Source of the DNA: Caecitellus pseudoparvulus | Lineage: Eukaryota > Protista > Bigyra: Bicosoecida | Direction: 5' to 3' | DNA: 36,486 nt | Assembly: GCA_965644315.1 (NCBI GenBank) | Contig: CBFFRQ010000012.1 | Span: forward strand, 1-36,486 | Shown: positions 3,946-36,486 of the stretch, piece after piece | How the letters are laid out: the number at the start of each line of letters is the position of its first letter | How positions within the stretch are numbered: the stretch's first letter is position 1 | Made by a program: the position numbers and the translations under genes | Notes under the pieces: model-generated | Database searches by the model: none | Told to the model about the DNA's origin: nothing | The model's input: the letters and a program-made list of their open reading frames with translations, nothing else

Positions 3946-4352
3946 CGTGGGTGTGGGATGCTGCTTGGCAGGGCCTGGTCCGGAGGGAGAGCTCGAGTTG
4001 CGTTTCAGTATCTGAAACGTGCCTAGGGGGCACACCAATCCGGACTTCACAACGCAACCAACACCACCGCGGCGGCAAGAAGCACACCTGCGCTAGTGGT
4101 TGATGTGCATTCGATCCCTAGCGTTTGTGAAAAGTCCCCCTGTAAGCCTGGAACGCGAGGGATACAAGGAAGCTTGCTGCGTTTTCCCTTGAGAGGGGGT
4201 GCAGGGGGGTGCAAGGGGGAGGGGGGTGCCTCACGCTGCTCTGTAAGCCAGCAAGGCGCAAAGGCACATTCCAGTCCCCCCCCCCTCTGTTAGTCACTTG
4301 CTCTTCTCGGCCACCTTCAGCTCTCAAGCACCCGTCTCCCCACCCAGACACC

Positions 4353-4724
4353 ATGGCTCAGCAACGCAGCGAAGTCAGCACGAGCTCAGTGCCTCAAGCC
4401 ACCGCCGCCGAGCATGACTCTGCAAAGCGAGCGTTCCAGGGCGTGCATGCGCATCTTCAAAGGATTGCCTTTGAAAAGGGCAAGCCCTTGCCCATCCCGG
4501 AGCGCAAGGTTTGGTTGGCGGGCGCCAGCAACGCAAATGGTGTGCTGCGCTGTGAAACGCTTCCCCACCACGCGCGCACAAAAGCACCAGTGCTTACCGC
4601 CCAGTCCTTGCCCGCGCCGCAGAAGAGTTCCTTCGCGCAGAAGTGCTGGGCCAGCTTGCTAAGCCGCCGCATGAATTGGACATGCCCGGTGGTGGTGGTG
4701 CGTGACATACCAACGCGAGACTAG
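4353..4724 (+). CDS. Hypothetical protein (123 aa), possibly the first exon or part of the next ORF
   Basis: ATG in ACACCATGG context, divergent from the transposase. Its TAG stop is 1 nt before the ATG of the next ORF. Confidence 0.35.
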   Translation: MAQQRSEVSTSSVPQATAAEHDSAKRAFQGVHAHLQRIAFEKGKPLPIPERKVWLAGASNANGVLRCETLPHHARTKAPVLTAQSLPAPQKSSFAQKCWASLLSRRMNWTCPVVVVRDIPTRD

Positions 4725-4725
4725 G

Positions 4726-8092: not shown

Positions 8093-8222
8093 CCCCCAAA
8101 GTGGGTGTTTGCACCACCCCCCCCCAAAGTGGGTGTCTGCCCCCCCCCCCCAAAAAGGAGTTTGCCCCACCCCCCTATACCCCTTCGAGGGCAACCCCCC
8201 AAAGGCATGTCGCCCCCCCCCC
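8093..8222. repeat. C-rich subterminal direct repeats (CCCCCAAAGTGGGTGTYTGC x2 plus two degenerate copies)
   Basis: Seen directly: cccccaaagtgggtgtttgc, cccccaaagtgggtgtctgc, cccccaaaaaggagtttgc, ccccccaaaggcatgtcgc. Confidence 0.75.
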
Positions 8223-8246
8223 GAAAATCTCACGACGGAAGTGGGC

Positions 8247-11200: not shown

Positions 11201-12302
11201 TGGGCTGGGCATTGTATTCGTCTGGCGATTTCTCGTGCCCTTGATTTGGCAGGCTGACGGCTCCAGCACTCTCAACTGTACACTTTGTCGCAGGAATGGG
11301 GAAGCTCCACCCGCAGATGACGCCCACGCCACAGTCACGGCCAGCACATCAGGGCCTCAAGGCGCACGCCAGAGTGCACCCCAGGCGGGTCGTGAGACGC
11401 GCGTGTCGAACCCCATGCGGACCCGAAGTCGAGCTTCCAGTGTGCAGCGAGCGTTGCGGGGACCAGCTGCGAGCATCAGGGCACAAGCCCGCACTTCCCC
11501 CCGCGAAGGCATTGTGGTGTCGTTCCTCGTCATGTGCTTTGTGCTGCACTTGGGGTTGACTCGATCCGCCCTGAGCTTGTTCACGTGCAGAATGATTGGA
11601 GGGCGAGCTTTTCTGGTGGGGGATGTGCAGATCTCCTGCGATGATCCACAGCACCAGGCGTGGATGTATGGGATTGGACTCCCTGCTTTCGTCTTGTATG
11701 GTTGCGGCATCACGGCAGCATCATTGATCTTGCTCTGGATCCATAGGGCCACGTTGGAGACCCCTGCGACACGGCAGGTATACGGCTTTCTTTATGCCGC
11801 GTACGCCCCAGGTCGGTACTTCTGGGAAGCTGCAGTGCAAGGCCGAAAGGTTGCCCTTGCGTGCATTTCAGTGCTGCTTGCACCTGCAGGCATTGGCGCC
11901 CAGGCGCACTTTGGCATACTTCTCATGGTCGGAGCCCTTGCAGCGCATGCAAGCTTGAGCCCGTACCGCCTCGCGCTGGTGAATCACTCCGAAACTGCCA
12001 GTCTTCTGGTTACCATCTCCACCCTGGCCGCGGGAGTAAGCCTGCTTGACCAAGGCACTTCAGCGGCCATGCACACGGTGGCGACTTGGTCCGTCATCCT
12101 CATGAATGTGGTCTTTATCGTAGTAGCAGCAGGCTTGGTGGCGCATTCGCTGCTGTCGTCCGCAGCAATCAAGGTACACATCGTCAGGTTACAGCGAAGC
12201 CTGTCAAAGGTAAGGGTCCCAGGAATGGCTAAGAAACAAGCTCGACAGGGAAAGTTGCATCCAATCACGGACGTTGTCTCAGTGACTCGTGTTCCCTTGT
12301 AG
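8247..12302 (+). CDS. Large membrane protein: IPT/TIG repeats, Cys-rich region, C-terminal multi-pass TM domain; N-terminus missing or displaced
   Basis: IPT-like units (ITIRGSGIG, LEVLGIGF, LTVTGSGFG...FSY), Cys-rich CRPCPQGAVC and C..RTGPLCAACAEGY, about 9 hydrophobic segments and YGFLYAAY...YFWE...RK, typical of protist Cys-rich multi-TM families. The first ~46 aa of the ORF-track protein are just translated C-rich repeat. Confidence 0.8.
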   Translation, partial: APLFLQATPPAVQVGHASSNNTVNVTLQGRYLGHNASAVSSLFIAGQGCPGLVWNRPTPHVWSLTCVGLPVAGLSTSAPPIAITAFGESFTQLDVLKIVPPPDMSPLRIISSGPGSTEHEQAITIRGSGIGAVGSDVLHVEVSDWGACHSVFWVDSSEVSCMAPAGAGNAEPVRVFLAGGHVLHGQFQYAAPSVHSIWPNTLLPWKANHPGGIVTMQLCTDGTRWSPPGRLLTASDVAIQVAGAPCVFQAQLNATCLSCWVDTAAVVPGAASSVYVRCAQASFAPGVGVQVLSLPQVSAVVPPLVSAAGGQVLEVLGIGFCRNSSGDVESVRIGSQAAAVRSCTSTSVSVTVPRPPASVQTASVSITLVSGHSAFLQDALQFSHPEVLTVLGGLVQPAPQGGQQIRNVSVTGLALDDGPRSLARLLFGSAPGLSCAQAGGELVFTSTRSLECRGFHTAALAPLASGRMADTTITIQTAQNLTAKSSLGTLRIMGPPRISELSSSSAAVNDTLTVTGSGFGLTHSDIAAVRIGARQVTTFTRGSDSIVTLRVPEPASDELADVFSLDIAISLASGHTAVLPRSFSYTLAPRAPVSAPTAVCPYRDEAGAARVAFNWIDDAATLLSPVGAWHVSFGVILHGGLISRVNASTRLVSLAGGAAGDILRNVDTPRVCRGLTEQPSALDFSVRVADAPAQPFWVAVAAGVLGESAGRVLRGPLSTQVGPLLPACGAAEYLATYELGEGRWPQVTCRPCPQGAVCNGAEWERVLAASGWFRIPWREPDISFEACVSEDVCPGESQSPVQVPSRHYTSSAFQALPGLGAAALNTTAAGNSSSVFSSHLQSSCEASRTGPLCAACAEGYTGQGDGSQPCTRCAPTWLNWLGVVGGVTVAGVLVAALTRSALASGGAPTKAHVALNKVLLTHLQQVGIAAAFPLAWPSELRGMFSVFDAASSVGDALISVDCLGLDSTSAFRGTQILTLLLPVVLGLGIVFVWRFLVPLIWQADGSSTLNCTLCRRNGEAPPADDAHATVTASTSGPQGARQSAPQAGRETRVSNPMRTRSRASSVQRALRGPAASIRAQARTSPREGIVVSFLVMCFVLHLGLTRSALSLFTCRMIGGRAFLVGDVQISCDDPQHQAWMYGIGLPAFVLYGCGITAASLILLWIHRATLETPATRQVYGFLYAAYAPGRYFWEAAVQGRKVALACISVLLAPAGIGAQAHFGILLMVGALAAHASLSPYRLALVNHSETASLLVTISTLAAGVSLLDQGTSAAMHTVATWSVILMNVVFIVVAAGLVAHSLLSSAAIKVHIVRLQRSLSKVRVPGMAKKQARQGKLHPITDVVSVTRVPL

Positions 12303-12960: not shown

Positions 12961-15042
12961 ATGGAAGGCGACGTCATGACGCTGCATGAACTTGCACAGT
13001 GTGGTAATATTGTAGGTGTGCGGTTGAAGCTTGAGACAGGGGCTGATGTGAACGCGGCAGACAAAAACGGCAAAACCCCACTGCACGAAGCCAGTAGGTG
13101 GAGCAACGCGGAGCTGGTGCAGGTGTTGGTGGGGGCGGGGGCCGACGTGAAGGCGGTCGACAAGGATGGGAACACGCCACTGCTGTTCGCCAGTTTTCAA
13201 GGTGCGGTTGAGGTGGTGCAGGTATTGGTGGGGGCGGGTGCAGAGGTGAGTGCTGCTAGCAAGGATGGCAACACTCCCCTGCAGTTCTCCAGCTGGCGCG
13301 GTTGGGTGGAGGTAGTGCGAGTGCTGTTGGTGGCGGGTGCAGATGTGAGTGCTGTGGACAAGGATGGCGTGTCTCCACTTCATGAGGCCAGCAAGGAAGG
13401 ACATAAGGAGGTGATGCAAGTGCTTCTAGAGGAGGGTGCTGACCCGAACGTCACCGATGTCGGCGGCAACACCCCTCTACACGCCCTCATGGCTGCAAGC
13501 AGGCTTGATCCGAGTGTGCGCCGTGCGGGTATCGCGATGCTGAAGAAGGCTGGGGCCGACGCCAGCCTGCGCAATACCGCCGGTCTGACCCCCGACCAAG
13601 TGGCTGAGCGTTTCTCTCTGGATACCAAGAAGGCCCTGGTACCAACCGTTCATGTCACGACGACTGTATTGTTCTGGGCCCTGCTTGGGGCCGCCCTGCA
13701 CTATTTCGACATTGTATCAGACGCCCAGGTGGCGGCGGCGTTCTGGGTTGAGCAGAACTATGTGTTCTTCTCGCTAGTTGTGGCGAGTGCGGGAATGAGC
13801 AGCGTGTACATGCTGTACGTGCTGGTGGGGGACTGTTTGCAGAATGAGTCGCCCACAGTGATGCAGCGGCTGAGCCCGCTGATCGGGCTGCTGCAGCTCA
13901 TCCCAGCAGTGGAGGCATGTCGTCTGGTGGCTTCGTGGGGAGGGGAGGCTCCAGACTACGACGCTTCTACTGAAGATTTGCGTGTAGTGGAGGTTGCGGT
14001 GGAGGCTGTGCCTCAGCTGGCGCTGCAGCTGTACATTCTCGGTCTGCTGGTGGAGGAGGGCGGTGTGGGGCGTCTGGGTGTGCTCCTGGTGATGAGTGTC
14101 GCAGGATCGGTAGGAAGCATGGTGTACCAGTACGCAGGGGTGACCGACCGCCCACAGATGGGCATGACAGTGCCGGTGTGGGTGCGTATCGTGTTGGGCG
14201 TGTGTCGGGTGTGCATGCTGCTGGGTAGACTGGTGTTTCTGGTGGCCCTGGGCCTTGCGACACGGGCTTGGGGAGGGGTGTTTGTGTATTTGTGGATGGA
14301 GACGTGGGTTGTGGTTACAGTGATCGAGTGGCACACGTGGTCGTGCTGGCCGACCGGGACGTGGAGAATTGCTGTTTTTGCGGGCGAAGGGCGTGAGGGC
14401 TGCCGTGAGGGTGCGAAGATGCTGTGTCTTATGTCTCCCTGCTGCTCTTGTCTGCTTTTTGTCCGGCCGCACATCAGGACGTTGCTGAAGAGCATCCTGA
14501 CTTGGAGTGCCTCCCTCATGGTGCCGTCCGGCGAGGATCCGCGAGAGGTTTCAGATGATCCGTGGACGTTTGTATCAGATACTGACGTAGCGTGGTCCCA
14601 GCACCCCAATGTGCTGCACCGCATCGTTGCGTCAGTGAGAGGAATAATGGGAGTTGTGATTCTCGTGGCATTGGCCATCGTGGTAGCCGCGGGGGAGAGC
14701 AGCTTCAACTGGGTGTGGCCGGCAGCGTGTGCTCTGGGTGTGTGGGGCATGGGTACGAGCGGGGCACTGGTCATGTCGTACTTCGTGCTGGGTGAGGCGC
14801 TTCAACGGGAAACGACTGACCCCACGCAGCAAAGCCAGCCCGACGCTGGTCAGGGCGCCCCCCCTTCTCCCACATCCTCTGCTTCTCCAACAGCTGTAAG
14901 GGGAAGTAGGGACAAGGTGCACACCATGGGACCATCGGCCAAGATTCACATCGGGGGGCAGCCATCTACCATTGATGTAAACTCACTTCGAGAGGTGAAG
15001 GTGGTGGGGTCGCCTTCGGCCACAGCTGCAGGGCTTGAGTAG
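12961..15042 (+). CDS. Ankyrin-repeat protein fused to an XK-related (Xkr scramblase-like) multi-TM domain
   Basis: About 6 ankyrin repeats (ADVNAADKNGKTPLHEA etc., 99-bp periodicity), then HYFDIVSD and EVAVEAVPQLALQLY, matching the XK-family DxxxD and ExxPQ motifs, with multiple TM helices. Confidence 0.82.
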   Translation: MEGDVMTLHELAQCGNIVGVRLKLETGADVNAADKNGKTPLHEASRWSNAELVQVLVGAGADVKAVDKDGNTPLLFASFQGAVEVVQVLVGAGAEVSAASKDGNTPLQFSSWRGWVEVVRVLLVAGADVSAVDKDGVSPLHEASKEGHKEVMQVLLEEGADPNVTDVGGNTPLHALMAASRLDPSVRRAGIAMLKKAGADASLRNTAGLTPDQVAERFSLDTKKALVPTVHVTTTVLFWALLGAALHYFDIVSDAQVAAAFWVEQNYVFFSLVVASAGMSSVYMLYVLVGDCLQNESPTVMQRLSPLIGLLQLIPAVEACRLVASWGGEAPDYDASTEDLRVVEVAVEAVPQLALQLYILGLLVEEGGVGRLGVLLVMSVAGSVGSMVYQYAGVTDRPQMGMTVPVWVRIVLGVCRVCMLLGRLVFLVALGLATRAWGGVFVYLWMETWVVVTVIEWHTWSCWPTGTWRIAVFAGEGREGCREGAKMLCLMSPCCSCLLFVRPHIRTLLKSILTWSASLMVPSGEDPREVSDDPWTFVSDTDVAWSQHPNVLHRIVASVRGIMGVVILVALAIVVAAGESSFNWVWPAACALGVWGMGTSGALVMSYFVLGEALQRETTDPTQQSQPDAGQGAPPSPTSSASPTAVRGSRDKVHTMGPSAKIHIGGQPSTIDVNSLREVKVVGSPSATAAGLE

Positions 15043-24016: not shown

Positions 24017-25222
24017 ATGGGCATCACCTTACCGGAACTTGCAATGAAAGTGCTCAGTAAAGCCTGGTCCAAAAGCATGATACAGACAGTAGATGTGTCA
24101 CTGAGAGCGGGAATGCGGACACGCAGGTGGGCGGGGTTCTCTGTAAATATCACCAACTTCTAGATGAACTGCGCCTACAGATACTTGGCAGCGATCATGC
24201 GCAAAGTGACACGCCAAACCTCGTTAGTTATGTGTAGTGTGACCTTGGTGTTCTTTTCGCTCTGGCGCGGACCCTCAGCAGTCCGAAATTTTCGCACCGG
24301 AGCCTGGTTCCCGCATTTTCGACGGCACTGGGTAGCATGGGTCAGGAGCAATGTCGTTGGCTGCGAGAGCATTTGCGACAGATGGTGGGTGACGCCACCG
24401 GGGCCCTCGCGCAACATTGCATGGGCCTGCTGGGCAGCTACATCGCCACGCCAGCTGCCGGCAAGGAGGCGGCCAAGTACTTGGGCAGCAAAGCCAAGAG
24501 CTTCCTCATCAGGTCTCCCTTCTCACAGCAAGTTGCCCGACACGCGGTTCAGGTGCTGACTGTAGAAGCCGCCAATACCGAGGGGGTGGACAGCTTCGAC
24601 AAGGTGCTCTCTGGGAAGCTTGCAAGCCACAAGGCAATGATCGATAGCAAAGTAATTGAGCAGGTGGAAGCAGTGTTGCTAGACATGGGCTTGGCGGGCG
24701 GAGGTGTTGCGATGTGTCCGAGCGACCAGGAGCAGCACATGCGCATGCTGCTCACAGACAGTCAGCCATCAGTCGCGTGGAGGGCTGCATTTGAAGCGGG
24801 GCAACTGCCTCCGATCTGCAGCAACGCAGCAGAGGGCAGCTGCATCAGCCTTGCTGATGTTGCCGCGATTCATCAGCTTGGCATTGGCAAGCATCACACG
24901 ATACACACGTCTCACGTTTTCCCAGGCATCGACCATGTAACGGTTGGGCTGGAGAGGCTCGATACAGCCACCGTGGTGACTCTGTCCGTCCAGGAGTCAA
25001 GCATGTCACCCTTCCTTATCCACGCCAAGAAGAAAGCCATCCAAGCCATCTTGAGCAAGTGGAAGGCTGATGGCACTGAATTCCAAGATCCCCGTGGAGT
25101 AGCGCGGGAGCTGACATGGCTGACTGCGGTTCCAAGGTGGATGGTCCAGGATCGCGGAACCAGCCTAGAGGCGCCGGTCGGGATTGTCAGAAAGAGAGAC
25201 ATCGTGCAAGATGCGAGTGTGA
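24017..25222 (+). pseudogene. Unknown gene remnant, truncated at a telomere-repeat remnant
   Basis: ORFs 23966-24163 and 24164-24559 are in one frame separated by TAG, then a frameshift leads into 24337-. Protein-like sequence stops at GGTTAGGGGTTAG (25223), and the rest of that ORF reads through element A. Confidence 0.45.
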
Positions 25223-25235
25223 GGTTAGGGGTTAG
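25223..25235 (+). repeat. Interstitial telomeric remnant GGTTAGGGGTTAG
   Basis: Same strand as the terminal TTAGGG array, and located exactly at the junction with the first telomeric element. Confidence 0.65.
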
Positions 25236-25770
25236 CTCACTCAATGCATTGCAACTTGCCTCCGCACACTCTTGCACGGTACAGCTTGGGCATCACTCGT
25301 GGTGCCTTGCGTACCACAGCACACGAATGCACTGCAGTAGGCACCACAGCGGCTCCGAGGTTGCCGGCACCCCAGCCGGCAACCATGTTTCCCGGCAGGA
25401 GGGGCGGCGGGCAGTCCCACGCTAGTGGCACAATTGTCCCCCGCCGCCCCAACGCAGAGTAGACGACGGCAGGACCGGGCATGACAAAACCAGTCATTAG
25501 CCGGCCTCGTCACTCTCTTTCCTTTTTTTTCGAGATGGCATCGGATGATCCAGCTTCCAGCGACACGGAGGGCGGAAGCTGGGAGGACATCCACGACAAA
25601 ATGATGTCTGTCAACTCCGCCAAGCAAGCCAAGGCGCTCATAACGGAGCAGGAGTTCGAGTACTGGCTGAAGTGGGCAGATTCTGAGGATTTTGGTAAGA
25701 TGGAGGCCGCTTGGCGCCTCCGGGAGGTGCCCGAGGGATTCCGGGAAGATCGCATGCGATCCCTCATTGC
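25231..25770 (-). mobile_element. Telomere-associated element A (3' fragment with conserved terminal motif)
   Basis: Starts GTTAGCTCACTCAATGCATTGCA...GTACAGCTTGGGC (25279-25288)...AATGCA...CCACAGCGGC, homologous to the starts at 25771, 26473, 28996 and 31924. The right boundary is set by the next element. Confidence 0.62.
25535..25770 (+). CDS. Truncated hypothetical protein, antisense to element A and cut by element B
   Basis: ATG after a T-tract. MASDDPASSDTEGGSWEDIHDKMM...EFEYWLKWA... looks protein-like up to the GTTAG junction at 25771. Confidence 0.35.
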
Positions 25771-26472
25771 GTTAGCAACTCACAATGCATTTCACCTCGG
25801 CACAGCTTGGCACCGTACAGCTTGAGCGTCACACGGGCGCCCCACAATGCACCTCTGCACATGTAGGACGCCACAGCGGCTACCGCTTGGCGCGGATTCG
25901 CAACAAACACAGGCTTGCACCCGTTATATCTGCCGCCACTTGCTAGGGCAGGTCCCTGCCCGCTCCAATTCATCATCTTGGCCCTCCTCCGCTTCACTTC
26001 ATCCCTTGCTCCGCCAGCGCCAGACACCTGGGGCACACCAGAGCACACCCAGGCATCCGCGCAGTCTTGACAACAGATCATAATCCAAATTCCTCACCCA
26101 CCTCCTCTGTGGGCCTCATAGGCCTCTCTGTGCCTTCCATGAGGTTCCTGCTGCGTCTCTGCGTGGTCTTTCGGCCGGTTGCGTGGTGCGGAATTCGATC
26201 GCGCACACCAGCACCCGTGCGCACACACGCGCCCGCGCCACAGAGCGCATCGCGCGCATCAAGGGGGATACAGAAAGGAAAAGGACCTTCTTCTTCAACC
26301 CGTCACGCCCTGGTTTCGTGGTGAGTGAGCTTGCTTCATCGTCAGCCGCCATCCGGGCCGCGGCCGTGCAGCACTGCGGCTGCACACGCGCCGCGGCCCG
26401 AGGCGCGCTCCCGCTCACTCCACCGTTACTCGCAGGTTATAGAGGGAATAAAAGGTAAGGTCTTGGTCGTCT
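25771..26472 (-). mobile_element. Telomere-associated element B (702 bp, no convincing ORF)
   Basis: Begins GTTAGCAACTCACAATGCATT. It is a diverged tandem copy of 26473-27103 (offset 702, ~70-bp indel). Confidence 0.7.
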
Positions 26473-28995
26473 GTTAGCTAATCGGAATGCATTTCACCTC
26501 GGTGCAGCTTGTCACCGTACAGCTTGAGCGTCACACGGGCGCCCCACAATGCACCTCTGCACATGTAGGACGCCACAGCGGCTACCGCTTGGCGCGGATT
26601 CGCAACAAACACAGGCTTGCGCCCGTTATATCTGCCGCCACTTGCTAGGGCAGGTCCCTGCCCGCTCAAATTCATCTTCTTGGTCCTCCTCCACTTCACT
26701 TCACCCCTTGCTCCTCTCACGCCAGACACCTGGGGCTCACCAGAGCACACCCAGGTGTCCGCGCAGTCTTGACAGTAGATCATAATTCAAATTCCTCACC
26801 CACCTCCTCTGTGGCCCTCATAGGCCTCACTGCGCCCTCCATGAGGTGTGTGCTCCGCCTGCGCCCGCACCACAGAGCGCACCGCGCACGTCAAGGAGCA
26901 TACAGGAAGGAAGAAGACATTTTCTTCAACCCGTCACGCCCTGGTTTCGTGGTGAGTGAGCTTGCTTCGGCGTCAGCAGCCTTCCGGGCCGTGGCCGTGC
27001 AGCACTGCAGCTGCACACGCGCCGCGGCCCGAGGCACGCTCCCGCTCACTCCTCCGCTACTCGCAGGCTATACAGTATGTAGAAGGTAAGATCTTGATCA
27101 ACTGTTTCTTGCTACCGTGGTTGTCACCACGCTTCACACAGGTTCATCACGTCAGGACGAACGTGGAGGGTAGGCCCGGCCACAAGCGTGGCTGTTCCAC
27201 GCCTCGCCCGCCCGCCTGCGTTCCGCCTTACTCCTCGCTCTCTTCACAGGAACTACCGAGACCCTCCCCGTCATCATCAGCGTCTGAAGAGGCTGGTGGT
27301 GGCCCCATGAAGTGCTGCAGGGTCCTCTGAACCTTTCCCTCCGTGGACGGCACCTGGCCAGCCTTGGCAGGGAAGAAGGTGCCTGCCCTGCGGCGAGTGC
27401 GAGGCCTGCGCGTGTGCCGCGTGGCTGCTGACCGCACTGGCTGCGTGCGGCCAGGCAGCGGTGCCCCGCGTCCGTGTACCGCCCACCACAGGTATTCAGC
27501 ATGCCTCTGGACTGCAAGGTGCTGGGGATCAGTCATGCGCAACATGTAAGTGACTGTCACCCGCCACGCCTTTGCTGTGAACTCGACTGCGCTTCGCAGG
27601 ATGTCCCGCCATGCAGCTGGGGCACGGACGCGACCAGGACCAGCACGGTGGACAAGGTGGGGGTGGGAGAGGACAGCCGCCTCTCTCATGGACACAAGCT
27701 GCTCGTCGTCGGCCAGTCCCCACCGGTGGGGCCACTGCCCGCAGAGCAGGAGCCTGTGGAGGACCTCGAGGTCCCGCAGGCTTCGCGGCTCTGGGTCGGG
27801 GGCACGAAGGAGGGCCTGAAGGATCTTGGGGGGGATGGGCAGGCACTGCACTTGGCCCGCTGCGGACTCGGGCACAGCTGACCAGTTGGCAAGTTCCTTG
27901 AACTTGGCCATCGTGTGTTGGCGTGCCACGGTGAGTTCGTGGTGGGTGCAGTGCAGTAAGATGTGCACATGGAGCTGTTCGTCAGTGTTGAGTCCGCAGA
28001 TCGGACAGCACTCGTACAGTGTGGGTGCATCCCCTCCATGGAGCAGCTGCAGAGTTTGGAACTGGTGCACCATCACCCTGGTGGGTCTGTCGTCGGCACA
28101 GACCCAGAAGAGGGGGTTGACACCATGTGGCAGTGGGTGGAGCCACACGAAGTGCTGCGCACCAGGCCCGAGATGATACGGCCTGGGCTTCTGCACTTGG
28201 GGGATGCGGCTGTCGACAGTGTAGTGAGCAGCTGCACTCGGCACTGCCTGGACTACATGAAGATACGACGCAAGGACTTGGCGACGCAGTGCCCAGGGAG
28301 TGTCGGCCGGGAAGGCAGGGGGTTCGGCCATGGACGACGACTCGCTGGCAGCCACCCCAACCACCGCAGACCTGTGGAGGCCCGGGGCTGTCTTAAGTCC
28401 GGCAAGGACTTGGGCAAGGGCAGAGGCAGCATGCTCAGAGCCAGGTGCACATGCAAGCCGAAGCTGTGCAAGGTCTGGCATGCAGCCCAGGAGCCAGAGG
28501 TCCAAGAGGGCATGCAGTGCCCACGGAGCAGGGACACTGGCAGCCCGGAGCCGACCTCCATCAGCAATGGTGTCGACGATGAAGGTCGTCGACACCGAGG
28601 TGGGCATGAGGTCAAGGGCCTGTGGGATGGTCAGACACAGGGCTCGGGCAAGGGGCGTGTCCGAGTGCAGCATTCGGAGGGCCTTGATGAACATCCCGAT
28701 CCGCAGCTGTGTGAAGCGGATGTGGGCAGGCAGGACTCCACACAGAGCCAGCTTGGCGTAGCTGTGCGGGCGCATGAGTGCACTCTGCGAGCCGACTTGG
28801 GTCCTGTCGAGGGCGAGGGCGACGCCGCGGTCAACGTCACGCAGCGGAAGCAGGGAGCTGTTGGCTTGGGTGGACAGCATGTAGTCGGCGGCTGAGGTGA
28901 CAGTAGCACACCCAACTAGGTGCCGCTGCTGCACATCGAGCCAGGTGGCACTGAGCAGCGCGCCCGCAGTGAACCCGGCTTGGATGCAAGCAAGG
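26473..28995 (-). mobile_element. Element C plus 5'-truncated non-LTR retrotransposon (C may be its 3' UTR)
   Basis: Begins GTTAGCTAATCGGAATGCATT and is homologous to B up to 27103. It continues, with no other GTTAGC junction or poly(A), into the ORF2-like frame ending at 27228. Confidence 0.6.
27228..28994 (-). CDS. C-terminal part of a non-LTR (LINE) ORF2-like protein: post-RT region and CCHC zinc knuckle; RT core absent (5'-truncated)
   Basis: The frame is open right up to the AGGGTTAG junction. LALCGVLPAHIRFTQLRIGMF resembles the LINE post-thumb motif, and CPICGLNTDEQLHVHILLHC is C-x2-C-x10-H-x4-C. Confidence 0.65.
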   Translation of the reverse strand, partial: LACIQAGFTAGALLSATWLDVQQRHLVGCATVTSAADYMLSTQANSSLLPLRDVDRGVALALDRTQVGSQSALMRPHSYAKLALCGVLPAHIRFTQLRIGMFIKALRMLHSDTPLARALCLTIPQALDLMPTSVSTTFIVDTIADGGRLRAASVPAPWALHALLDLWLLGCMPDLAQLRLACAPGSEHAASALAQVLAGLKTAPGLHRSAVVGVAASESSSMAEPPAFPADTPWALRRQVLASYLHVVQAVPSAAAHYTVDSRIPQVQKPRPYHLGPGAQHFVWLHPLPHGVNPLFWVCADDRPTRVMVHQFQTLQLLHGGDAPTLYECCPICGLNTDEQLHVHILLHCTHHELTVARQHTMAKFKELANWSAVPESAAGQVQCLPIPPKILQALLRAPDPEPRSLRDLEVLHRLLLCGQWPHRWGLADDEQLVSMREAAVLSHPHLVHRAGPGRVRAPAAWRDILRSAVEFTAKAWRVTVTYMLRMTDPQHLAVQRHAEYLWWAVHGRGAPLPGRTQPVRSAATRHTRRPRTRRRAGTFFPAKAGQVPSTEGKVQRTLQHFMGPPPASSDADDDGEGLGSSCEESEE

Positions 28996-29120
28996 GTTAG
29001 CTACTCAATGCATTGCAGATTGCCTCCATGCAGGCTACATCATGGTACAGCTTGGGCTTGGACATGTGGTGCCACCTGCGCCACAACAGAATGCAGTGAC
29101 ACAGACACCACGACGGCACC
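28996..29120 (-). other. Conserved structured 3'-terminal RNA motif (also at 25231, 25771, 26473, 31924)
   Basis: Invariant CAAGCUGUA next to a hairpin that differs in sequence but keeps pairing in all variants, enclosed by a UGCAUU/AAUGCA stem and ending in GCUAAC. Confidence 0.6.
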
Positions 29121-29615
29121 GCTTGCACGGCTTTGCGACTAGCACAGACTCGTGTCCGTTGTATAAGTCGCCGTCTGTCTTGGCGCTTCAGCGCCCGCCC
29201 CGGTGGGATGGTCTTGAGGTGTAGGTCCAGGTCTCGGTCCACTCTTGTCTTGTCCGTCCAGTCCAGTCTCGTCCGTCTCGGTCCGATGTCCAGGGGTGGA
29301 GACCCGACTTGCTTGGCTTGGGTGGCGGTGTGGGCTGGAGGATATGGACTCGACACGGACTGGGTGTTGCTGAGATGCAAGCACACGACCCAGCCCGGCT
29401 GTCCCTTCGGCTCAGGTTTGGGGGCGGCCTCACAGATCTTGCTGCAAGTGCCTTCCCCTTCCACTGAGCCGAGTCCTGATGTGTTGGTATCGATGTTGGG
29501 TTGGTGATGGTGAGGTTGGGTTGGACTTTCCAATGTCCGATGTCAGCTATGTGCGTCGGTCGCGACACAAAGCTTCAGTCATGTGTGGCACAGGGAGTAT
29601 GCCCCCACAGGTGAC

Positions 29616-31742
29616 TTACATCAGGCGTCCACCCATCTGCCCGATCGAGATGTGGGGCACATCCTTGACCTTGGGCAGGCGACCCTCGCCGTCTTCAGGC
29701 ACCAGCCGCTTGAGGGGGTCCTTGACCTCAGCCTCCAGGGTGGCGGCCTGCTGTCGGGTCATCCGCCCATGAGGCATGGCCACCCTTGTGCCCTTGCCAG
29801 CGATGAGGGTCTGGGGGTGCACGGTGCCGTCGGTGGCCTTGTGAGGCAGGGGGGGGAAGTCATCTCGGAGAGACTGGAGTGCCCCTCGAAGCCTGTCCCG
29901 GAAGGGTGCTGGACTGCCCGCCTCGGGTGTGGTCCAGATCCGGTACAAGACGTTGATGCCTTCGGCTGCCAGCCGGGTCATGCACTTGTGCAGGGGCAGC
30001 TCGTCATGGAGGTCAGGGATGTCGGGGTTCCACAGCACCAGCTTGCCTCGATCATGGTCGACGAGGATGAGCTGCAGATGGGCCGTGTTGTCGGTCCACA
30101 CCTCTCGAAGTGCGAAGGCATACAGCACTCCGTCGAGGTGCCCCTCTTGGTCACCCTCTTCATCAACCTGGCTGGGGTCGACGCCGGCCTGGCCAAGGTC
30201 ATCATGCCCGGCTGGGGCACGGTACCCTTGGTTGATGCGGTCGATGAGCAGGTGCAGGCCGGGAAGCAGGACTGGTGGTGTACCTGGGGCCAGGAAGGTG
30301 TCATCCGGCGAGTGCTGGTGCAGCATGTTGCGGAAGACGGCCACCCGTTGCCCGTCTGAGCGGAAGGGGGAGGGTGGCTTCTGGCCGACGTCCATGATGT
30401 CCGAGCTGGACGAGTCACTGACCACCCCCTCCAGCTGCCTGACCATGTGCTTGAAGGCAAGCTGGGCAGCGTTGATGGTGGCTGCATGCTGGAGTAGGAG
30501 GAGGTCCCCAGCCTCGAAGACCCTCTCCCCTGCTGCCGTCTCGAGACAGGCCTGGACACAGGCCCGCCCCCCCACGTTAGAGTACACGTGGGTCGATGAC
30601 AGCAGGTCGGCCAGAGGGCCAGGCTTGATGGGGTACTCGGCCAGGTGCTCGGGTGTCCGCACACTGTCATGAAGAGGCACCACCCTTGTGATCACCTCCC
30701 ATGCTGCTGCTGCAGACGGCCGATACCGGTGCACCTCGGGGCTTGCCTCGCCCGACGGGGTGGGGGACGGCCACTTGCGGTCGACGCCCCGCTGCACCCT
30801 TGATGAAGGCAACATGGCATGCACCACAGGGGTGGTGACGGTATCTTTGGGTGAGCCTTGGGTGGCAGGTGGTGAGGTTGGTCGAGGTGCAGGTGGCCGG
30901 ACGTTCTTGATGAAGACGTCCTCGAAGGTGAGGGATCGTCCGGCTGACTTGCCCTTTCCTCGCTTGCCTCGACGGGTCTTCTTCTTCTTCGGTGCCTTGT
31001 CGAGCTGAGTGTCAGTCCAGGTCGATGGTGTCTTGGTGTCGACAGGTGCATCACCCTCGGAGGGGACGGATTGTCTGACACTGGGACGGACGGCTTGGGC
31101 TGGCACGGGGCCATGGTCGAAGTGGGACCTAACGAGGCACATGACCTTGGCAACATCACCTGACTGGCAGGCGATTTCGGTTGCTTCCTTGGTCACTTGG
31201 TGGGCCACTTGGATGGCGGTGGGGTGGGCCTTCACCTTCACTTTCGCCTTCGCCGATGCGAACTGCTTGGTGTTGGTGTAGGCCACGGCGACGAACCCAC
31301 CTTGGCCGACTCGAATGGCGAAGTCGTCCTCTTGAGCAGCAAGAATGCGAAGTTGACGTGCCACTGTTGGTGAATCACCCTCACTTCCGAGCGTGACGAG
31401 GATGGTTGGCGATCCGGTGGGTCCCTGGCGCAGGGCCGCATTGGCGTTGCCGAATTCCGCACTCAGCCCTGGGATCAGCCGTTCGGCGGCTTCCCCATAG
31501 ACCTCGAGCCACATGTCCCGTGCCGAAGATGAACTATCATGATCAGTCTTGGGCAGGGGTCCTCCAAGCTCGAAGGTGCGTGCGGCACCCCGACGTGGCA
31601 TGTCAGTGAAGACACCTGTTCTGGGGCCGAGCACTTGCTTGCGCTTCAGGCACCCCTCCACGAAGAGGACCCCCAGGACTTGATCCACTTGGGCGTTCAT
31701 GATGCTTGTCAATGATGCTTTTGATGTCGATCCCAGGTGCAT
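29616..31742 (-). CDS. ~708-aa unknown protein; basic NLS-like tract, Pro-rich linker, possible papain-like Cys-His-Asn domain
   Basis: First ATG at 31742 (alternative 31700). Motifs KAPKKKKTRRGKRGKGK and NVGGRACVQAC ... TAHLQLILVDHDRGKLVLWNP. No YxDD RT motif seen. Confidence 0.75.
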   Translation of the reverse strand: MHLGSTSKASLTSIMNAQVDQVLGVLFVEGCLKRKQVLGPRTGVFTDMPRRGAARTFELGGPLPKTDHDSSSSARDMWLEVYGEAAERLIPGLSAEFGNANAALRQGPTGSPTILVTLGSEGDSPTVARQLRILAAQEDDFAIRVGQGGFVAVAYTNTKQFASAKAKVKVKAHPTAIQVAHQVTKEATEIACQSGDVAKVMCLVRSHFDHGPVPAQAVRPSVRQSVPSEGDAPVDTKTPSTWTDTQLDKAPKKKKTRRGKRGKGKSAGRSLTFEDVFIKNVRPPAPRPTSPPATQGSPKDTVTTPVVHAMLPSSRVQRGVDRKWPSPTPSGEASPEVHRYRPSAAAAWEVITRVVPLHDSVRTPEHLAEYPIKPGPLADLLSSTHVYSNVGGRACVQACLETAAGERVFEAGDLLLLQHAATINAAQLAFKHMVRQLEGVVSDSSSSDIMDVGQKPPSPFRSDGQRVAVFRNMLHQHSPDDTFLAPGTPPVLLPGLHLLIDRINQGYRAPAGHDDLGQAGVDPSQVDEEGDQEGHLDGVLYAFALREVWTDNTAHLQLILVDHDRGKLVLWNPDIPDLHDELPLHKCMTRLAAEGINVLYRIWTTPEAGSPAPFRDRLRGALQSLRDDFPPLPHKATDGTVHPQTLIAGKGTRVAMPHGRMTRQQAATLEAEVKDPLKRLVPEDGEGRLPKVKDVPHISIGQMGGRLM

Positions 31743-31923
31743 GCCCCGACCGAGGGCGCAAACTGGGAGCCACGGTGCGATGGTGTGCGGAATTCGCACT
31801 ACCCCGCCCCGGTGCGCACCACCCAACCAGCAAGCACTGTGCAACACCACACTTGGGTGCACGAGCGCCTGGATTAGGCAATGTTAGCACTTCACAACTT
31901 GTGATTAGCTTGACATTTGGAAA

Positions 31924-34851
31924 GTTAGCTACTCAATGCATTGCAGATTGCCTCCATGCAGGCTACATCATGGTACAGCTTGGGCTTGGACATGTGGTGC
32001 CACCTGCGCCACAACAGAATGCAGTGACACAGACACCACGACGGCACCGCTTGCACGGCTTTGCGACTAGCACAGACTCGTGTCCGTTGTATAAGTCGCC
32101 GTCTGTCTTGGCGCTTCAGCGCCCGCCCCGGTGGGATGGTCTTGAGGTGTAGGTCCAGGTCTCGGTCCACTCTTGTCTTGTCCGTCCAGTCCAGTCTCGT
32201 CCGTCTCGGTCCGATGTCCAGGGGTGGAGACCCGACTTGCTTGGCTTGGGTGGCGGTGTGGGCTGGAGGATATGGACTCGACACGGACTGGGTGTTGCTG
32301 AGATGCAAGCACACGACCCAGCCCGGCTGTCCCTTCGGCTCAGGTTTGGGGGCGGCCTCACAGATCTTGCTGCAAGTGCCTTCCCCTTCCACTGAGCCGA
32401 GTCCTGATGTGTTGGTATCGATGTTGGGTTGGTGATGGTGAGGTTGGGTTGGACTTTCCAATGTCCGATGTCAGCTATGTGCGTCGGTCGCGACACAAAG
32501 CTTCAGTCATGTGTGGCACAGGGAGTATGCCCCCACAGGTGACTTACATCAGGCGTCCACCCATCTGCCCGATCGAGATGTGGGGCACATCCTTGACCTT
32601 GGGCAGGCGACCCTCGCCGTCTTCAGGCACCAGCCGCTTGAGGGGGTCCTTGACCTCAGCCTCCAGGGTGGCGGCCTGCTGTCGGGTCATCCGCCCATGA
32701 GGCATGGCCACCCTTGTGCCCTTGCCAGCGATGAGGGTCTGGGGGTGCACGGTGCCGTCGGTGGCCTTGTGAGGCAGGGGGGGGAAGTCATCTCGGAGAG
32801 ACTGGAGTGCCCCTCGAAGCCTGTCCCGGAAGGGTGCTGGACTGCCCGCCTCGGGTGTGGTCCAGATCCGGTACAAGACGTTGATGCCTTCGGCTGCCAG
32901 CCGGGTCATGCACTTGTGCAGGGGCAGCTCGTCATGGAGGTCAGGGATGTCGGGGTTCCACAGCACCAGCTTGCCTCGATCATGGTCGACGAGGATGAGC
33001 TGCAGATGGGCCGTGTTGTCGGTCCACACCTCTCGAAGTGCGAAGGCATACAGCACTCCGTCGAGGTGCCCCTCTTGGTCACCCTCTTCATCAACCTGGC
33101 TGGGGTCGACGCCGGCCTGGCCAAGGTCATCATGCCCGGCTGGGGCACGGTACCCTTGGTTGATGCGGTCGATGAGCAGGTGCAGGCCGGGAAGCAGGAC
33201 TGGTGGTGTACCTGGGGCCAGGAAGGTGTCATCCGGCGAGTGCTGGTGCAGCATGTTGCGGAAGACGGCCACCCGTTGCCCGTCTGAGCGGAAGGGGGAG
33301 GGTGGCTTCTGGCCGACGTCCATGATGTCCGAGCTGGACGAGTCACTGACCACCCCCTCCAGCTGCCTGACCATGTGCTTGAAGGCAAGCTGGGCAGCGT
33401 TGATGGTGGCTGCATGCTGGAGTAGGAGGAGGTCCCCAGCCTCGAAGACCCTCTCCCCTGCTGCCGTCTCGAGACAGGCCTGGACACAGGCCCGCCCCCC
33501 CACGTTAGAGTACACGTGGGTCGATGACAGCAGGTCGGCCAGAGGGCCAGGCTTGATGGGGTACTCGGCCAGGTGCTCGGGTGTCCGCACACTGTCATGA
33601 AGAGGCACCACCCTTGTGATCACCTCCCATGCTGCTGCTGCAGACGGCCGATACCGGTGCACCTCGGGGCTTGCCTCGCCCGACGGGGTGGGGGACGGCC
33701 ACTTGCGGTCGACGCCCCGCTGCACCCTTGATGAAGGCAACATGGCATGCACCACAGGGGTGGTGACGGTATCTTTGGGTGAGCCTTGGGTGGCAGGTGG
33801 TGAGGTTGGTCGAGGTGCAGGTGGCCGGACGTTCTTGATGAAGACGTCCTCGAAGGTGAGGGATCGTCCGGCTGACTTGCCCTTTCCTCGCTTGCCTCGA
33901 CGGGTCTTCTTCTTCTTCGGTGCCTTGTCGAGCTGAGTGTCAGTCCAGGTCGATGGTGTCTTGGTGTCGACAGGTGCATCACCCTCGGAGGGGACGGATT
34001 GTCTGACACTGGGACGGACGGCTTGGGCTGGCACGGGGCCATGGTCGAAGTGGGACCTAACGAGGCACATGACCTTGGCAACATCACCTGACTGGCAGGC
34101 GATTTCGGTTGCTTCCTTGGTCACTTGGTGGGCCACTTGGATGGCGGTGGGGTGGGCCTTCACCTTCACTTTCGCCTTCGCCGATGCGAACTGCTTGGTG
34201 TTGGTGTAGGCCACGGCGACGAACCCACCTTGGCCGACTCGAATGGCGAAGTCGTCCTCTTGAGCAGCAAGAATGCGAAGTTGACGTGCCACTGTTGGTG
34301 AATCACCCTCACTTCCGAGCGTGACGAGGATGGTTGGCGATCCGGTGGGTCCCTGGCGCAGGGCCGCATTGGCGTTGCCGAATTCCGCACTCAGCCCTGG
34401 GATCAGCCGTTCGGCGGCTTCCCCATAGACCTCGAGCCACATGTCCCGTGCCGAAGATGAACTATCATGATCAGTCTTGGGCAGGGGTCCTCCAAGCTCG
34501 AAGGTGCGTGCGGCACCCCGACGTGGCATGTCAGTGAAGACACCTGTTCTGGGGCCGAGCACTTGCTTGCGCTTCAGGCACCCCTCCACGAAGAGGACCC
34601 CCAGGACTTGATCCACTTGGGCGTTCATGATGCTTGTCAATGATGCTTTTGATGTCGATCCCAGGTGCATGCCCCGACCGAGGGCGCAAACTGGGAGCCA
34701 CGGTGCGATGGTGTGCGGAATTCGCACTACCCCGCCCCGGTGCGCACCACCCAACCAGCAAGCACTGTGCAACACCACACTTGGGTGCACGAGCGCCTGG
34801 ATTAGGCAATGTTAGCACTTCACAACTTGTGATTAGCTTGACATTTGGAAA
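31924..34851 (-). mobile_element. 2928-bp telomeric unit E, capped directly by the telomere
   Basis: Copy of unit D; ends ...GACATTTGGAAA followed by GTTTGGGTTAGGG. Confidence 0.8.
32544..34670 (-). CDS. Second identical copy of the ~708-aa protein
   Basis: Translation identical to 29616-31742. Confidence 0.75.
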   Translation of the reverse strand: MHLGSTSKASLTSIMNAQVDQVLGVLFVEGCLKRKQVLGPRTGVFTDMPRRGAARTFELGGPLPKTDHDSSSSARDMWLEVYGEAAERLIPGLSAEFGNANAALRQGPTGSPTILVTLGSEGDSPTVARQLRILAAQEDDFAIRVGQGGFVAVAYTNTKQFASAKAKVKVKAHPTAIQVAHQVTKEATEIACQSGDVAKVMCLVRSHFDHGPVPAQAVRPSVRQSVPSEGDAPVDTKTPSTWTDTQLDKAPKKKKTRRGKRGKGKSAGRSLTFEDVFIKNVRPPAPRPTSPPATQGSPKDTVTTPVVHAMLPSSRVQRGVDRKWPSPTPSGEASPEVHRYRPSAAAAWEVITRVVPLHDSVRTPEHLAEYPIKPGPLADLLSSTHVYSNVGGRACVQACLETAAGERVFEAGDLLLLQHAATINAAQLAFKHMVRQLEGVVSDSSSSDIMDVGQKPPSPFRSDGQRVAVFRNMLHQHSPDDTFLAPGTPPVLLPGLHLLIDRINQGYRAPAGHDDLGQAGVDPSQVDEEGDQEGHLDGVLYAFALREVWTDNTAHLQLILVDHDRGKLVLWNPDIPDLHDELPLHKCMTRLAAEGINVLYRIWTTPEAGSPAPFRDRLRGALQSLRDDFPPLPHKATDGTVHPQTLIAGKGTRVAMPHGRMTRQQAATLEAEVKDPLKRLVPEDGEGRLPKVKDVPHISIGQMGGRLM

Positions 34852-36486
34852 GTTTGGGTTAGGGTTAGGGTTAGGGTTAGGGTTAGGGTTAGGGTTAGGG
34901 TTAGGGTTAGGGTTAGGGTTAGGGTTAGGGTTAGGGTTAGGGTTAGGGTTAGGGTTAGGGTTAGGGTTAGGGTTAGGGTTAGGGTTAGGGTTAGGGTTAG
35001 GGTTAGGGTTAGGGTTAGGGTTAGGGTTAGGGTTAGGGTTAGGGTTAGGGTTAGGGTTAGGGTTAGGGTTAGGGTTAGGGTTAGGGTTAGGGTTAGGGTT
35101 AGGGTTAGGGTTAGGGTTAGGGTTAGGGTTAGGGTTAGGGTTAGGGTTAGGGTTAGGGTTAGGGTTAGGGTTAGGGTTAGGGTTAGGGTTAGGGTTAGGG
35201 TTAGGGTTAGGGTTAGGGTTAGGGTTAGGGTTAGGGTTAGGGTTAGGGTTAGGGTTAGGGTTAGGGTTAGGGTTAGGGTTAGGGTTAGGGTTAGGGTTAG
35301 GGTTAGGGTTAGGGTTAGGGTTAGGGTTAGGGTTAGGGTTAGGGTTAGGGTTAGGGTTAGGGTTAGGGTTAGGGTTAGGGTTAGGGTTAGGGTTAGGGTT
35401 AGGGTTAGGGTTAGGGTTAGGGTTAGGGTTAGGGTTAGGGTTAGGGTTAGGGTTAGGGTTAGGGTTAGGGTTAGGGTTAGGGTTAGGGTTAGGGTTAGGG
35501 TTAGGGTTAGGGTTAGGGTTAGGGTTAGGGTTAGGGTTAGGGTTAGGGTTAGGGTTAGGGTTAGGGTTAGGGTTAGGGTTAGGGTTAGGGTTAGGGTTAG
35601 GGTTAGGGTTAGGGTTAGGGTTAGGGTTAGGGTTAGGGTTAGGGTTAGGGTTAGGGTTAGGGTTAGGGTTAGGGTTAGGGTTAGGGTTAGGGTTAGGGTT
35701 AGGGTTAGGGTTAGGGTTAGGGTTAGGGTTAGGGTTAGGGTTAGGGTTAGGGTTAGGGTTAGGGTTAGGGTTAGGGTTAGGGTTAGGGTTAGGGTTAGGG
35801 TTAGGGTTAGGGTTAGGGTTAGGGTTAGGGTTAGGGTTAGGGTTAGGGTTAGGGTTAGGGTTAGGGTTAGGGTTAGGGTTAGGGTTAGGGTTAGGGTTAG
35901 GGTTAGGGTTAGGGTTAGGGTTAGGGTTAGGGTTAGGGTTAGGGTTAGGGTTAGGGTTAGGGTTAGGGTTAGGGTTAGGGTTAGGGTTAGGGTTAGGGTT
36001 AGGGTTAGGGTTAGGGTTAGGGTTAGGGTTAGGGTTAGGGTTAGGGTTAGGGTTAGGGTTAGGGTTAGGGTTAGGGTTAGGGTTAGGGTTAGGGTTAGGG
36101 TTAGGGTTAGGGTTAGGGTTAGGGTTAGGGTTAGGGTTAGGGTTAGGGTTAGGGTTAGGGTTAGGGTTAGGGTTAGGGTTAGGGTTAGGGTTAGGGTTAG
36201 GGTTAGGGTTAGGGTTAGGGTTAGGGTTAGGGTTAGGGTTAGGGTTAGGGTTAGGGTTAGGGTTAGGGTTAGGGTTAGGGTTAGGGTTAGGGTTAGGGTT
36301 AGGGTTAGGGTTAGGGTTAGGGTTAGGGTTAGGGTTAGGGTTAGGGTTAGGGTTAGGGTTAGGGTTAGGGTTAGGGTTAGGGTTAGGGTTAGGGTTAGGG
36401 TTAGGGTTAGGGTTAGGGTTAGGGTTAGGGTTAGGGTTAGGGTTAGGGTTAGGGTTAGGGTTAGGGTTAGGGTTAGGGTTAGGGTT
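34852..36486 (+). repeat. Telomere (TTAGGG)n, ~271 units, first unit variant TTTGGG
   Basis: In-phase TTAGGG array from 34859 to the window end, with the G-rich strand running 5'->3' outward. Confidence 0.99.

Follow-up and report, generated by a model that had tools for sequence, protein, structure and literature searches.

The right end of contig C12 of the bicosoecid Caecitellus pseudoparvulus, whose genome measures 30.6 Mb with about 62% GC, raises the question of what kind of element has been stacked on a chromosome end and by which route it was added there. The stretch analysed, called the window here, comprises 36,486 nucleotides (positions 1 to 36,486 of CBFFRQ010000012.1) and from position 25223 onwards it holds five head-to-tail segments followed by terminal telomere repeats. 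Our analysis indicates that this stack is very probably composed of telomere-specific long interspersed nuclear elements (LINEs), with subfamilies B and C as autonomous members and type A as their partner, which would prime from G-strand ends and lengthen or heal chromosome ends beside telomerase. An earlier note, made from the letters of the window, had proposed terminal head-to-tail retroelements; the RNA 3' end (...AAUGCAUU-N-GCUAAC) lies towards the centromere, and the junctions, the 5' truncation, the orientation and the reverse transcriptase (RT) relatives described below all agree with that proposal.

The five-unit stack and its distribution over the genome

A pattern search of the window with the terminal motif GTTAGC-N(4-8)-AATGCATT-N(20-32)-GTACAGCTTG gave exactly the five segment starts named in the earlier note (25231, 25771, 26473, 28996 and 31924), all on the plus strand, and no match is expected by chance (100 shuffles of the window). 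Direct reading has also borne out the telomere sequence described ahead of two segments, namely the 8-nt remnant GGTTAGGG (25223-25230, plus strand) between the chromosome body and the first element, and AGG (28993-28995) before 28996. The last segment is capped by a terminal telomerase-type tract (34852-36486, plus strand), which starts with an irregular G-TTTGGG (34852-34858) and continues as perfect (TTAGGG)n from 34859 to the end of the window, which is the contig end. The long open reading frames (ORFs) of the stack all lie on the minus strand and read away from the chromosome end. No poly(A) is present in the window stack, where the 3' end reads ...GCTAAC, and target-site duplications are unreadable because the target is a 6-bp repeat; among site-specific LINEs, neither a poly(A) or simple-repeat tail nor such a duplication is a universal feature.

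The innermost segment was found to be composite. Its first 126 nt (25231-25356, minus strand) are a 3'-terminal fragment of the autonomous LINE subfamily B with extreme 5' truncation, 100% identical to positions 1-126 of the B reference, and these are followed by 414 nt (25357-25770, plus strand) from a dispersed repeat resembling a long terminal repeat (LTR), which occurs at internal sites in both orientations and lies outside the telomeric family. The second segment (25771-26472, minus strand) is a 703-nt 3'-terminal fragment of subfamily C, 96% identical to reference positions 1-703, and the third (26473-28995, minus strand) is a 5'-truncated copy of the same subfamily, covering reference positions 1-2593 with a 70-nt gap in BLASTN. 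The 568-aa ORF of this third segment (27228-28934) corresponds to the C-terminal region behind the RT, as it shows 43% identity to residues 1549-2120 of the B ORF in tblastn; it carries the motif CPICG...H..H....C at residue 310, and a Pfam search with it gave nothing significant. The LINE-like CCHC remnant, which had earlier been taken for an unusual combination, is hence an ordinary C-terminal part of a LINE ORF.

The fourth and fifth segments are exact tandem copies of 2,928 bp, and both are full-length, non-autonomous type A elements on the minus strand. The inner copy (28996-31923) consists of a 3' untranslated region (UTR; 28996-29615), an ORF (29616-31700) and a 5' leader (31701-31923), and the identical outermost copy (31924-34851) has its ORF at 32544-34628. 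According to the consensus fold, the 3' UTR terminates (28996-29115, minus strand) in a long hairpin and a short hairpin followed by single-stranded AAUGCAUU-N6-CUAAC-3'. At the other end, about 95 nt of the 5' leader (31829-31923 and again 34757-34851, minus strand) are conserved across subfamilies and form a putative internal promoter or end-recapping sequence. The view that the bodies of the five segments belong to three unrelated types could not be maintained, since segments 2 and 3 are both of subfamily C, the start of segment 1 belongs to the sister subfamily B and the type A ORF has its homologue in the N-terminal third of the B/C ORF.

At the inner edge of the retroelement stack, a low-copy subtelomeric ORF (24337-25222, plus strand) is interrupted after 25222 by the 8-nt remnant of telomere sequence, and the stack therefore sits on a healed break. 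The open frame at 24337-25425 passes through this junction.

In the whole genome the terminal motif was found in 113 copies, 90 in reverse and 23 in forward direction, and the backwards control gave 0. The positions of 100 listed copies among the 113 were analysed. Every listed reverse copy is at most 29.4 kb from a contig start and every listed forward copy at most 11.4 kb from a contig end, and all 100, spread over more than 50 contig ends, have the GTTAGC side facing inward and the body facing outward. The assembly-wide search suggested in the earlier note has thus returned end-proximal copies in one orientation, and neither of the patterns it had named as counter-evidence, randomly oriented internal copies or a duplication at a single end without an RT relative, was found among them. 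A looser pattern, GTTAG-N(4-12)-AATGCATT, matched 82 times in forward and 0 times in reverse direction in the fetched and oriented chromosome ends.

A six-frame search of the genome with the RT region gave 91 matches from at least six lineages (100, 77-80, 61-63, 54-57 and 36-47% identity), many of them inside open frames of 2,000-3,394 aa. The RT sense strand runs from telomere to centromere in all matches but one fragment. This fragment, at G000:C23:10663-11160 (-), is the sole RT fragment of the family that is opposed relative to its nearest contig end (contig of 58,771). The most divergent RT lineage, with 36-37% identity to B, was seen near contig ends at C147:54629-56107 (-) and C42:707731-709218 (-), in frames of 3,394 aa and 2,779 aa respectively. 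Degenerate family copies of 70-81% identity lie deeper in the subtelomere on C43 (rev 3093-9848) and C184 (rev 3032-10465; loci L045-L048), from which it follows that the LINE family has long been resident at these ends.

The autonomous LINEs and their gag-only partner

The first 20-30 kb of nine other telomeric contigs carry units of 7.6-7.9 kb which begin with the same terminal motif, and the full-length copy that the earlier note had hoped to recover is present among them. The autonomous members possess a single ORF of 2,144-2,386 aa, in which an N-terminal domain of about 700 aa is followed by an endonuclease (EN) of the apurinic/apyrimidinic endonuclease (APE) type, the RT and a C-terminal CCHC region. 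In the intact copy on C134, whose 2,144-aa ORF carries both enzymes, the RT matches RVT_1 (PF00078) with an E value of 6.1e-30 and the endonuclease matches Exo_endo_phos (PF03372) with 2.5e-6, above its cut-off; the Pfam scan of this polyprotein detected no family besides these two, and no Rfam hammerhead search was made. Among the sequences of solved structures, the best matches of this ORF are human LINE-1 ORF2p (E about 1e-18) and then R2 proteins. The EN motifs WN, TE, YxPN, GDLN, D and SDH are all kept in subfamily B and in its two database relatives, P0001 (58% identity) and P0002 (32% identity). The EN region alone matched PDB sequences only at E values of 0.25-1.1 and a fold search was needed to recognise the APE fold; its AlphaFold (AF2) model, with a predicted local distance difference test score (pLDDT) of 72, matched APE1, NExo and the L1 EN at E values of 1e-11 to 1e-13. 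The approximately 650 aa after the RT hold a C-x2-C...H...C motif. Complete B and C copies were treated as pieces across two loci.

An RT and an APE endonuclease mark the family as LINEs, as do the absence of LTRs and the combination of intact 3' ends with 5' truncation at variable points. It is one old and diversified non-LTR family, to which B, C and at least four more autonomous subfamilies belong. Homologues from outside the family are only about 21-29% identical, and close protein relatives among 5.8 billion sequences number two, one from a marine metagenome and one from a coral metagenome.

Type A encodes a protein of 694 aa from MNAQ (694-748 aa) without EN or RT. In the B, C and P0001 polyproteins, the N-terminal 640-800 aa match the type A ORF over its full length with 41-43% identity. 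At the DNA level A resembles B and C at the ends only, where the 3' 116 nt are about 77% and the 5' 90-150 nt are 85-92% identical. A, B, C and a metagenome element share about 93% identity over the first approximately 95 nt of the 5' leader, against only 42-58% between their proteins. Of the 100 listed motif copies 60 are type A, which is the outermost unit at most ends, and each of its copies in the fetched chromosome ends is 100% identical to the window copy. Sample runs were searched with a query of 3,061 letters from which the terminal repeat tract had been left out, and this search yielded type A versions of 97-98% identity, their sources being a marine metagenome and two further organisms. 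Relative to these samples, 33 differences were listed within the ORF, of which 23 are synonymous and 10 nonsynonymous; 23 fall at third positions, and the ratio of nonsynonymous to synonymous rates (dN/dS) is about 0.15. This value indicates purifying selection and hence a functional type A protein. On the basis of these sequence comparisons, type A is regarded as a separately evolving lineage and no recent deletion derivative. As it has no RT and yet carries the 5' leader and the structured 3' UTR of the family, it would have to borrow the RT in trans.

The nature of the shared N-terminal protein was approached through fold comparison. A Pfam search with the type A ORF gave nothing significant, with no zinc-knuckle match in the N-terminal part, and when the N-terminal alignment was used as a profile to search 1.84 billion representatives exhaustively, the only match was a 48-aa fragment. 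The AlphaFold model of this region has a mean pLDDT of 47 and reaches 70-89 only at residues 360-620. With this model, Foldseek found GtgE, Josephin and a papain-like toxin at E values of 0.03-0.3, and VIA-align ranked two Josephins highest (Z of 7.5 and 7.4), followed by calpain, staphopain, C39 peptidases and streptopain (Z range 7.5-5). Language-model (Atlas) feature scores of 0.83-0.87 were obtained for C58 and C39 peptidases, and the invariant residues N375, C381, C385, H541, N558 and D560 stand in the order that a papain-like fold requires. Three weak lines of evidence agree, and residues 360-620 probably adopt a papain-like (clan CA, Josephin-like) cysteine-peptidase fold. The LINE known as Dualen is non-telomeric, has two endonucleases and carries a protease domain elsewhere in its polyprotein. 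As described in the citing review, the protease domain in the Dualen polyprotein is papain/Josephin-like, so that a Josephin-like protease inside a LINE has a precedent, likened here by description only (Kojima and Fujiwara 2005, as cited in PMC8557442).

Addition to chromosome ends and neighbouring sequences

The units bear clear marks of reverse transcription. In all ends examined, every unit begins at reference position 1, the RNA 3' end, with the junction ...TTAG|C, and this phase is uniform in all subfamilies and in a related organism. The 5' stops are variable (40, 89, 107, 134, 154, 183, 212, 263, 450, 1332, 1748, 2687, 4018, 7009, 7232, 7541 or full length), and abortive starts of 12, 18 and 38 nt are also seen; those of 12-18 nt are followed by 3-8 nt of telomere sequence and then by a fresh start. 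In the last 120 nt of the RNA, the long and the short hairpin precede the single-stranded AAUGCAUU-N-CUAAC. Across 12 subfamily representatives, this fold shows compensatory changes in 10 of 14 consensus pairs, 90% of the cells pair in comparison to 20-66% with slid partners, and 0 of 500 shuffles reach the observed value. By analogy with other site-specific LINEs, for which such recognition is established, the 3' UTR structure is presumably recognised by the RT.

Between some units there are telomere tracts of a few nt to 650 bp, and complete ends are capped by 0.8-4.4 kb of repeats. The catalogue of 3' junctions comprises 74 entries, some of them counted twice because GTTAGGGTTAGC can be placed at two offsets. 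In about two thirds of these junctions the telomere sequence upstream is no longer than 12 nt, and in only 4 is it 300-650 bp long. At several junctions (C32 at 8016; window 25771 and 26473) the unit abuts unique DNA or a truncated unit directly, with no repeat in between. Full-length units end in telomere phase with ...GGAAAGTTAG, after which 0, 1 or many TTAGGG follow, and such an end accounts for the way in which the two A copies of the window adjoin directly (GGAAA|GTTAGC). Junction classes with 3 and 4 G were set aside since long-read homopolymer errors are likely. As a separate observation, telomere repeats that follow a full-length element often open with an irregular unit (TTTGGG, TTTAGG or TTTGG), as at 34852-34858 in the window and at the ends of C44, C150, C184, C134, C32 and C41 (L031-L048, L030). 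In addition, the same short linkers separate truncated elements from telomere repeats on different ends, with TCCTTGCCGG found twice on C32 and CTTCTTTAGG found on C134, C44, C41 and C11. Non-templated RT additions, telomerase start-up errors and sequencing errors are candidate causes.

In contigs from other runs (a marine metagenome and two other organisms), telomere repeats are found immediately ahead of 28996 and immediately past 31928. Among these contigs, X12 holds a copy truncated at 31537 and capped by repeats, and X11 has an A-A junction with an extra GTTAGG. The metagenome scaffold L051 (7,707 bp) contains a complete element of a related organism with CCCTAA repeats on both flanks, and its ends (5' CTTTCCAAATGTCAA..., 3' ...AATGCATTGAACAGCTAAC) match those of the family. 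The coral-metagenome relative L052 has no telomere repeats and no 3' motif in its contig, which probably ends early and is uninformative in this respect. Telomerase itself is encoded in the genome, as a 1,389-aa open frame (locus L068) gives a Telomerase_RBD match with an E value of 7e-21 at G000:C77:25738-26142 (-); the elements thus act beside telomerase and not instead of it.

In the proposed mechanism, an RNA without poly(A) would end with ...AAUGCAUU-N(4-12)-CUAAC; its 3' end is predicted to read ...AAUGCAUUGAGUAGCUAAC, to which CCCUAA read-through may be added, and its 5' end (CUAA)CUUUCCAAAUGUC. Since the G strand runs on into the cDNA strand, the primer should be a G-strand 3'-OH ending in ...TTAG, which is able to pair with CUAAC. 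From this 3'-OH the cDNA would be primed and would continue the G strand, the polarity and the junctions being observed directly. Synthesis would frequently abort, giving the 5' truncations, and a completed cDNA end ...GGAAAGTTAG would be extended by telomerase or by the next element. The type A RNA would be copied in trans by the RT of B or C. Since almost no telomere repeat precedes most junctions, new units may be added mainly where an end is critically short or eroded, or may arise when the RT jumps from one RNA to another. We consider it reasonably probable that such short or eroded ends are the main sites of addition, possibly with template jumping.

The chief competitor to addition on eroded ends accepts the same LINEs and differs in the primer. 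Insertion would then occur mainly by classical EN-dependent, site-specific target-primed reverse transcription, with the G strand nicked at TTAG^GG in duplex (TTAGGG)n, and the elements would be parasites of the telomere repeats and not end-extenders. In the silkworm, the SART1 and TRAS1 endonucleases do nick telomere-repeat duplex. The APE catalytic motifs kept in B, P0001 and P0002 and the APE fold of the EN model are what such a route would call for; the uniform ...TTAG|C phase in every subfamily and in the related organism, the full-length copies lying in phase between telomere repeats on both sides and the internal tracts of 300-650 bp are equally in its favour. The junctions, however, tell against it: random nicking of 0.8-4.4 kb tracts would rarely leave 0-12 nt upstream at about two thirds of them, direct joins to unique DNA or truncated elements (C32 8016, window 25771 and 26473) contain no repeat to be nicked, and the 12-18 nt abortive starts are followed by 3-8 nt of telomere sequence and a new start. 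The single orientation is also the one that natural 3' ends permit. Nicking as the main route is therefore rated as unlikely, though it deserves to be taken seriously. The annealing of CUAAC to an eroded G-overhang, as put forward in the earlier note, stands in so far as the junction phase fits pairing of CUAAC with ...GTTAG; between an overhang and an endonuclease nick as the source of the primer, the junction statistics favour very short or eroded ends.

The remaining explanations carry far less weight. If the arrays were subtelomeric repeats moved by recombination or break-induced replication like the yeast Y' elements, with retrotransposition extinct and the telomere pieces as relics, the identical compound junctions on C18 and C30, the exact 2,928-bp A-A junction on several ends and the 100% identity of type A copies in the fetched ends, which gene conversion is able to give as well, would be accounted for. 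Dozens of distinct 5' truncation points beside uniformly intact 3' ends would not be, nor would the many open frames of at least 2,000 aa in at least six lineages, the purifying selection on the A ORF across samples or the junctions that vary between samples (the GTTAGG insert of X11 and the truncation at 31537 in X12), and recombination as the only process is very improbable. The earlier analogy with EN-deficient Penelope-like elements of the Athena/Coprina/terminon type, annealing to a G-overhang, drew on an equal polarity and on the short reverse-complement telomere sequence CUAAC at the RNA 3' end; it has to be given up almost entirely, since the RT is of the LINE type (matching RVT_1 and the LINE-1 and R2 structures, with LINE-1 ORF2p as the closest solved one), the N-terminal APE endonuclease is intact with all catalytic motifs, and the 5' truncation and CCHC tail are LINE features. 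An assembly artefact, in which chimeric long-read joins formed at repetitive ends, might be suspected from the variable G-run length at junctions and the many small telomeric contigs, and is given hardly any credence as the like architecture recurs on more than 50 contig ends, in independent runs of other samples and organisms, and in the unrelated metagenome scaffold L051.

Several points nevertheless weigh against the proposed addition of these LINEs to short ends. The EN is intact across lineages that are only 32-58% identical, so it is probably used and nick-primed insertion into duplex repeats stays a live option. In a target made of 6-bp repeats, either route would leave full-length copies in phase at both their 5' and 3' junctions. 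The short upstream tracts could have arisen from later deletion of internal telomere sequence, or from RNAs with read-through repeats. The identical multi-element junctions on different ends (e.g. C18/C30) imply that subtelomeric recombination also spreads arrays, and the G-run lengths at junctions may include long-read homopolymer errors. The protease-like fold is assigned from a low-confidence model and middling scores (Z at most 7.5). Moreover, the 5' and 3' RNA ends and the mobilisation of A in trans are deduced from genomic DNA, and none of the sample runs carrying type A is an RNA run.

The sequences adjoining the stack have their own features. The DNA at 24300-25222 has one 90% paralogue, at G000:C93:4453-5373 (-), near a contig start and in like orientation relative to the end, which suggests a duplicated subtelomeric gene family. 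The repeat at 25357-25770 has at least 23 full matches and about 17 partial ones (query 1-174), the latter at a distance of about 5.48 kb from a full match; copies occur at internal sites in both orientations, with 99-100% identity in nearly all cases. An active retrotransposon of roughly 5.5 kb, LTR-type (or split-direct-repeat) in structure, seems to be its source, and insertion followed by terminal erosion, or template switching, are the candidate explanations for the presence of this 414-nt piece between LINE units. Further inward, the region 571-4050 (-) encodes an ORF of 1,159 aa with a C2H2 zinc finger and a weak, sub-threshold match to Plavaka transposase, and may be part of a subtelomeric Plavaka-type DNA transposon. 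Two long uninterrupted ORFs lie at 8109-12302 (+) and 12961-15042 (+); the former encodes an IPT/TIG-repeat protein of 1,397 aa and the latter a protein of 693 aa in which ankyrin repeats are fused to an XK-related domain.

Relation to known telomeric elements and significance

The telomere-specific LINEs listed to date are SART/TRAS, GilM/GilT, Zepp, MoTeR, Tx1-1_ACar and HeT-A/TART/TAHRE (PMC10088271). The Caecitellus family works most like the fly HeT-A/TART system, and it coexists with telomerase like SART/TRAS. The Drosophila elements HeT-A, TART and TAHRE (Jockey clade) likewise form head-to-tail terminal arrays with 3' ends towards the centromere and variable 5' truncation, and attach directly to non-telomeric broken ends. 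HeT-A moreover resembles type A in being a very abundant gag-only partner beside RT-encoding relatives with shared termini. Unlike the fly system, where telomerase is absent, Caecitellus keeps TERT and long TTAGGG tracts. The elements here also differ from those of the fly in having no poly(A), a fixed telomere-phase CUAAC 3' end, one fused ORF in place of gag plus pol, and an N-terminal protein with a probable papain/Josephin-like fold and no zinc-knuckle Gag.

SART and TRAS of Bombyx and Tribolium (R1 clade) share with the present family an APE EN and RT, a fixed phase in telomerase-type repeats and the coexistence with telomerase. Recognition of a structured 3' UTR by the RT is established for SART1 and would hold for the Caecitellus family by extension. 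In contrast, SART/TRAS have poly(A), two ORFs (a zinc-knuckle gag plus pol) and two families opposite in orientation, whereas the family here shows one orientation, no poly(A), a single ORF and most junctions without upstream repeats.

Elements of the CRE-like group have a restriction-like endonuclease (REL type) or no endonuclease, and Zepp has poly(A). To our knowledge, none of Zepp, GilM/GilT, MoTeR and Tx1-1_ACar has been described with a separately evolving gag-only partner or such an N-terminal domain. These elements of Chlorella, Giardia, Pyricularia and the anole, respectively, are like the present ones in being non-LTR elements with 5' truncation that pile up within or upon telomerase repeats; the CRE-like group includes GilM/GilT and MoTeR, and the L1-like Tx1-1_ACar targets TTAGGG repeats as found here (PMC10088271). 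Athena, Coprina and the terminons correspond in the reverse-complement telomere sequence at the RNA 3' end, the proposed annealing to the G-overhang, the terminal location and the one orientation, but they have a Penelope-like RT, no EN, hammerhead motifs and a longer telomere complement (PMC8557442), as against the LINE RT, APE EN and 5-nt CUAAC seen here. The family thus fails the defining features of SART/TRAS (two ORFs, poly(A)), of the fly system (no telomerase) and of the EN-deficient Penelope-like elements.

In a broader and tentative reading, which we hold with less than even confidence, this telomerase-positive protist would possess a second, retrotransposon-based pathway of end maintenance that evolved independently of Drosophila. 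It would consist of a pair of gag-only and gag-EN-RT elements, with a 5-nt telomere complement aligned on short ends like a telomerase template and a leader that recreates a telomerase-extendable end. The elements would then be a mutualistic healing device and a snapshot of the stage before the fly loss of telomerase, and the Josephin-like gag domain would be new in its position.

Telomere-specific LINEs are known from a handful of lineages, namely flies, silkworm, beetles, Giardia, Chlorella, the rice-blast fungus and the anole. Arguments about how a parasite turns into a partner in telomere maintenance have drawn mainly on Drosophila, which has already lost telomerase. In the present case, a small-genome and apparently culturable marine protist has been found to carry a HeT-A/TART-like pair on essentially every end, with telomerase retained. 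The family also adds a very divergent LINE lineage with an unusual N-terminal domain. The identical sampled copies of the partner and the many open polyprotein frames make the questions directly testable: whether additions occur on short telomeres, whether the EN is needed, how priming is guided by the 5-nt complement together with the structured 3' UTR, and what the gag-only partner contributes.

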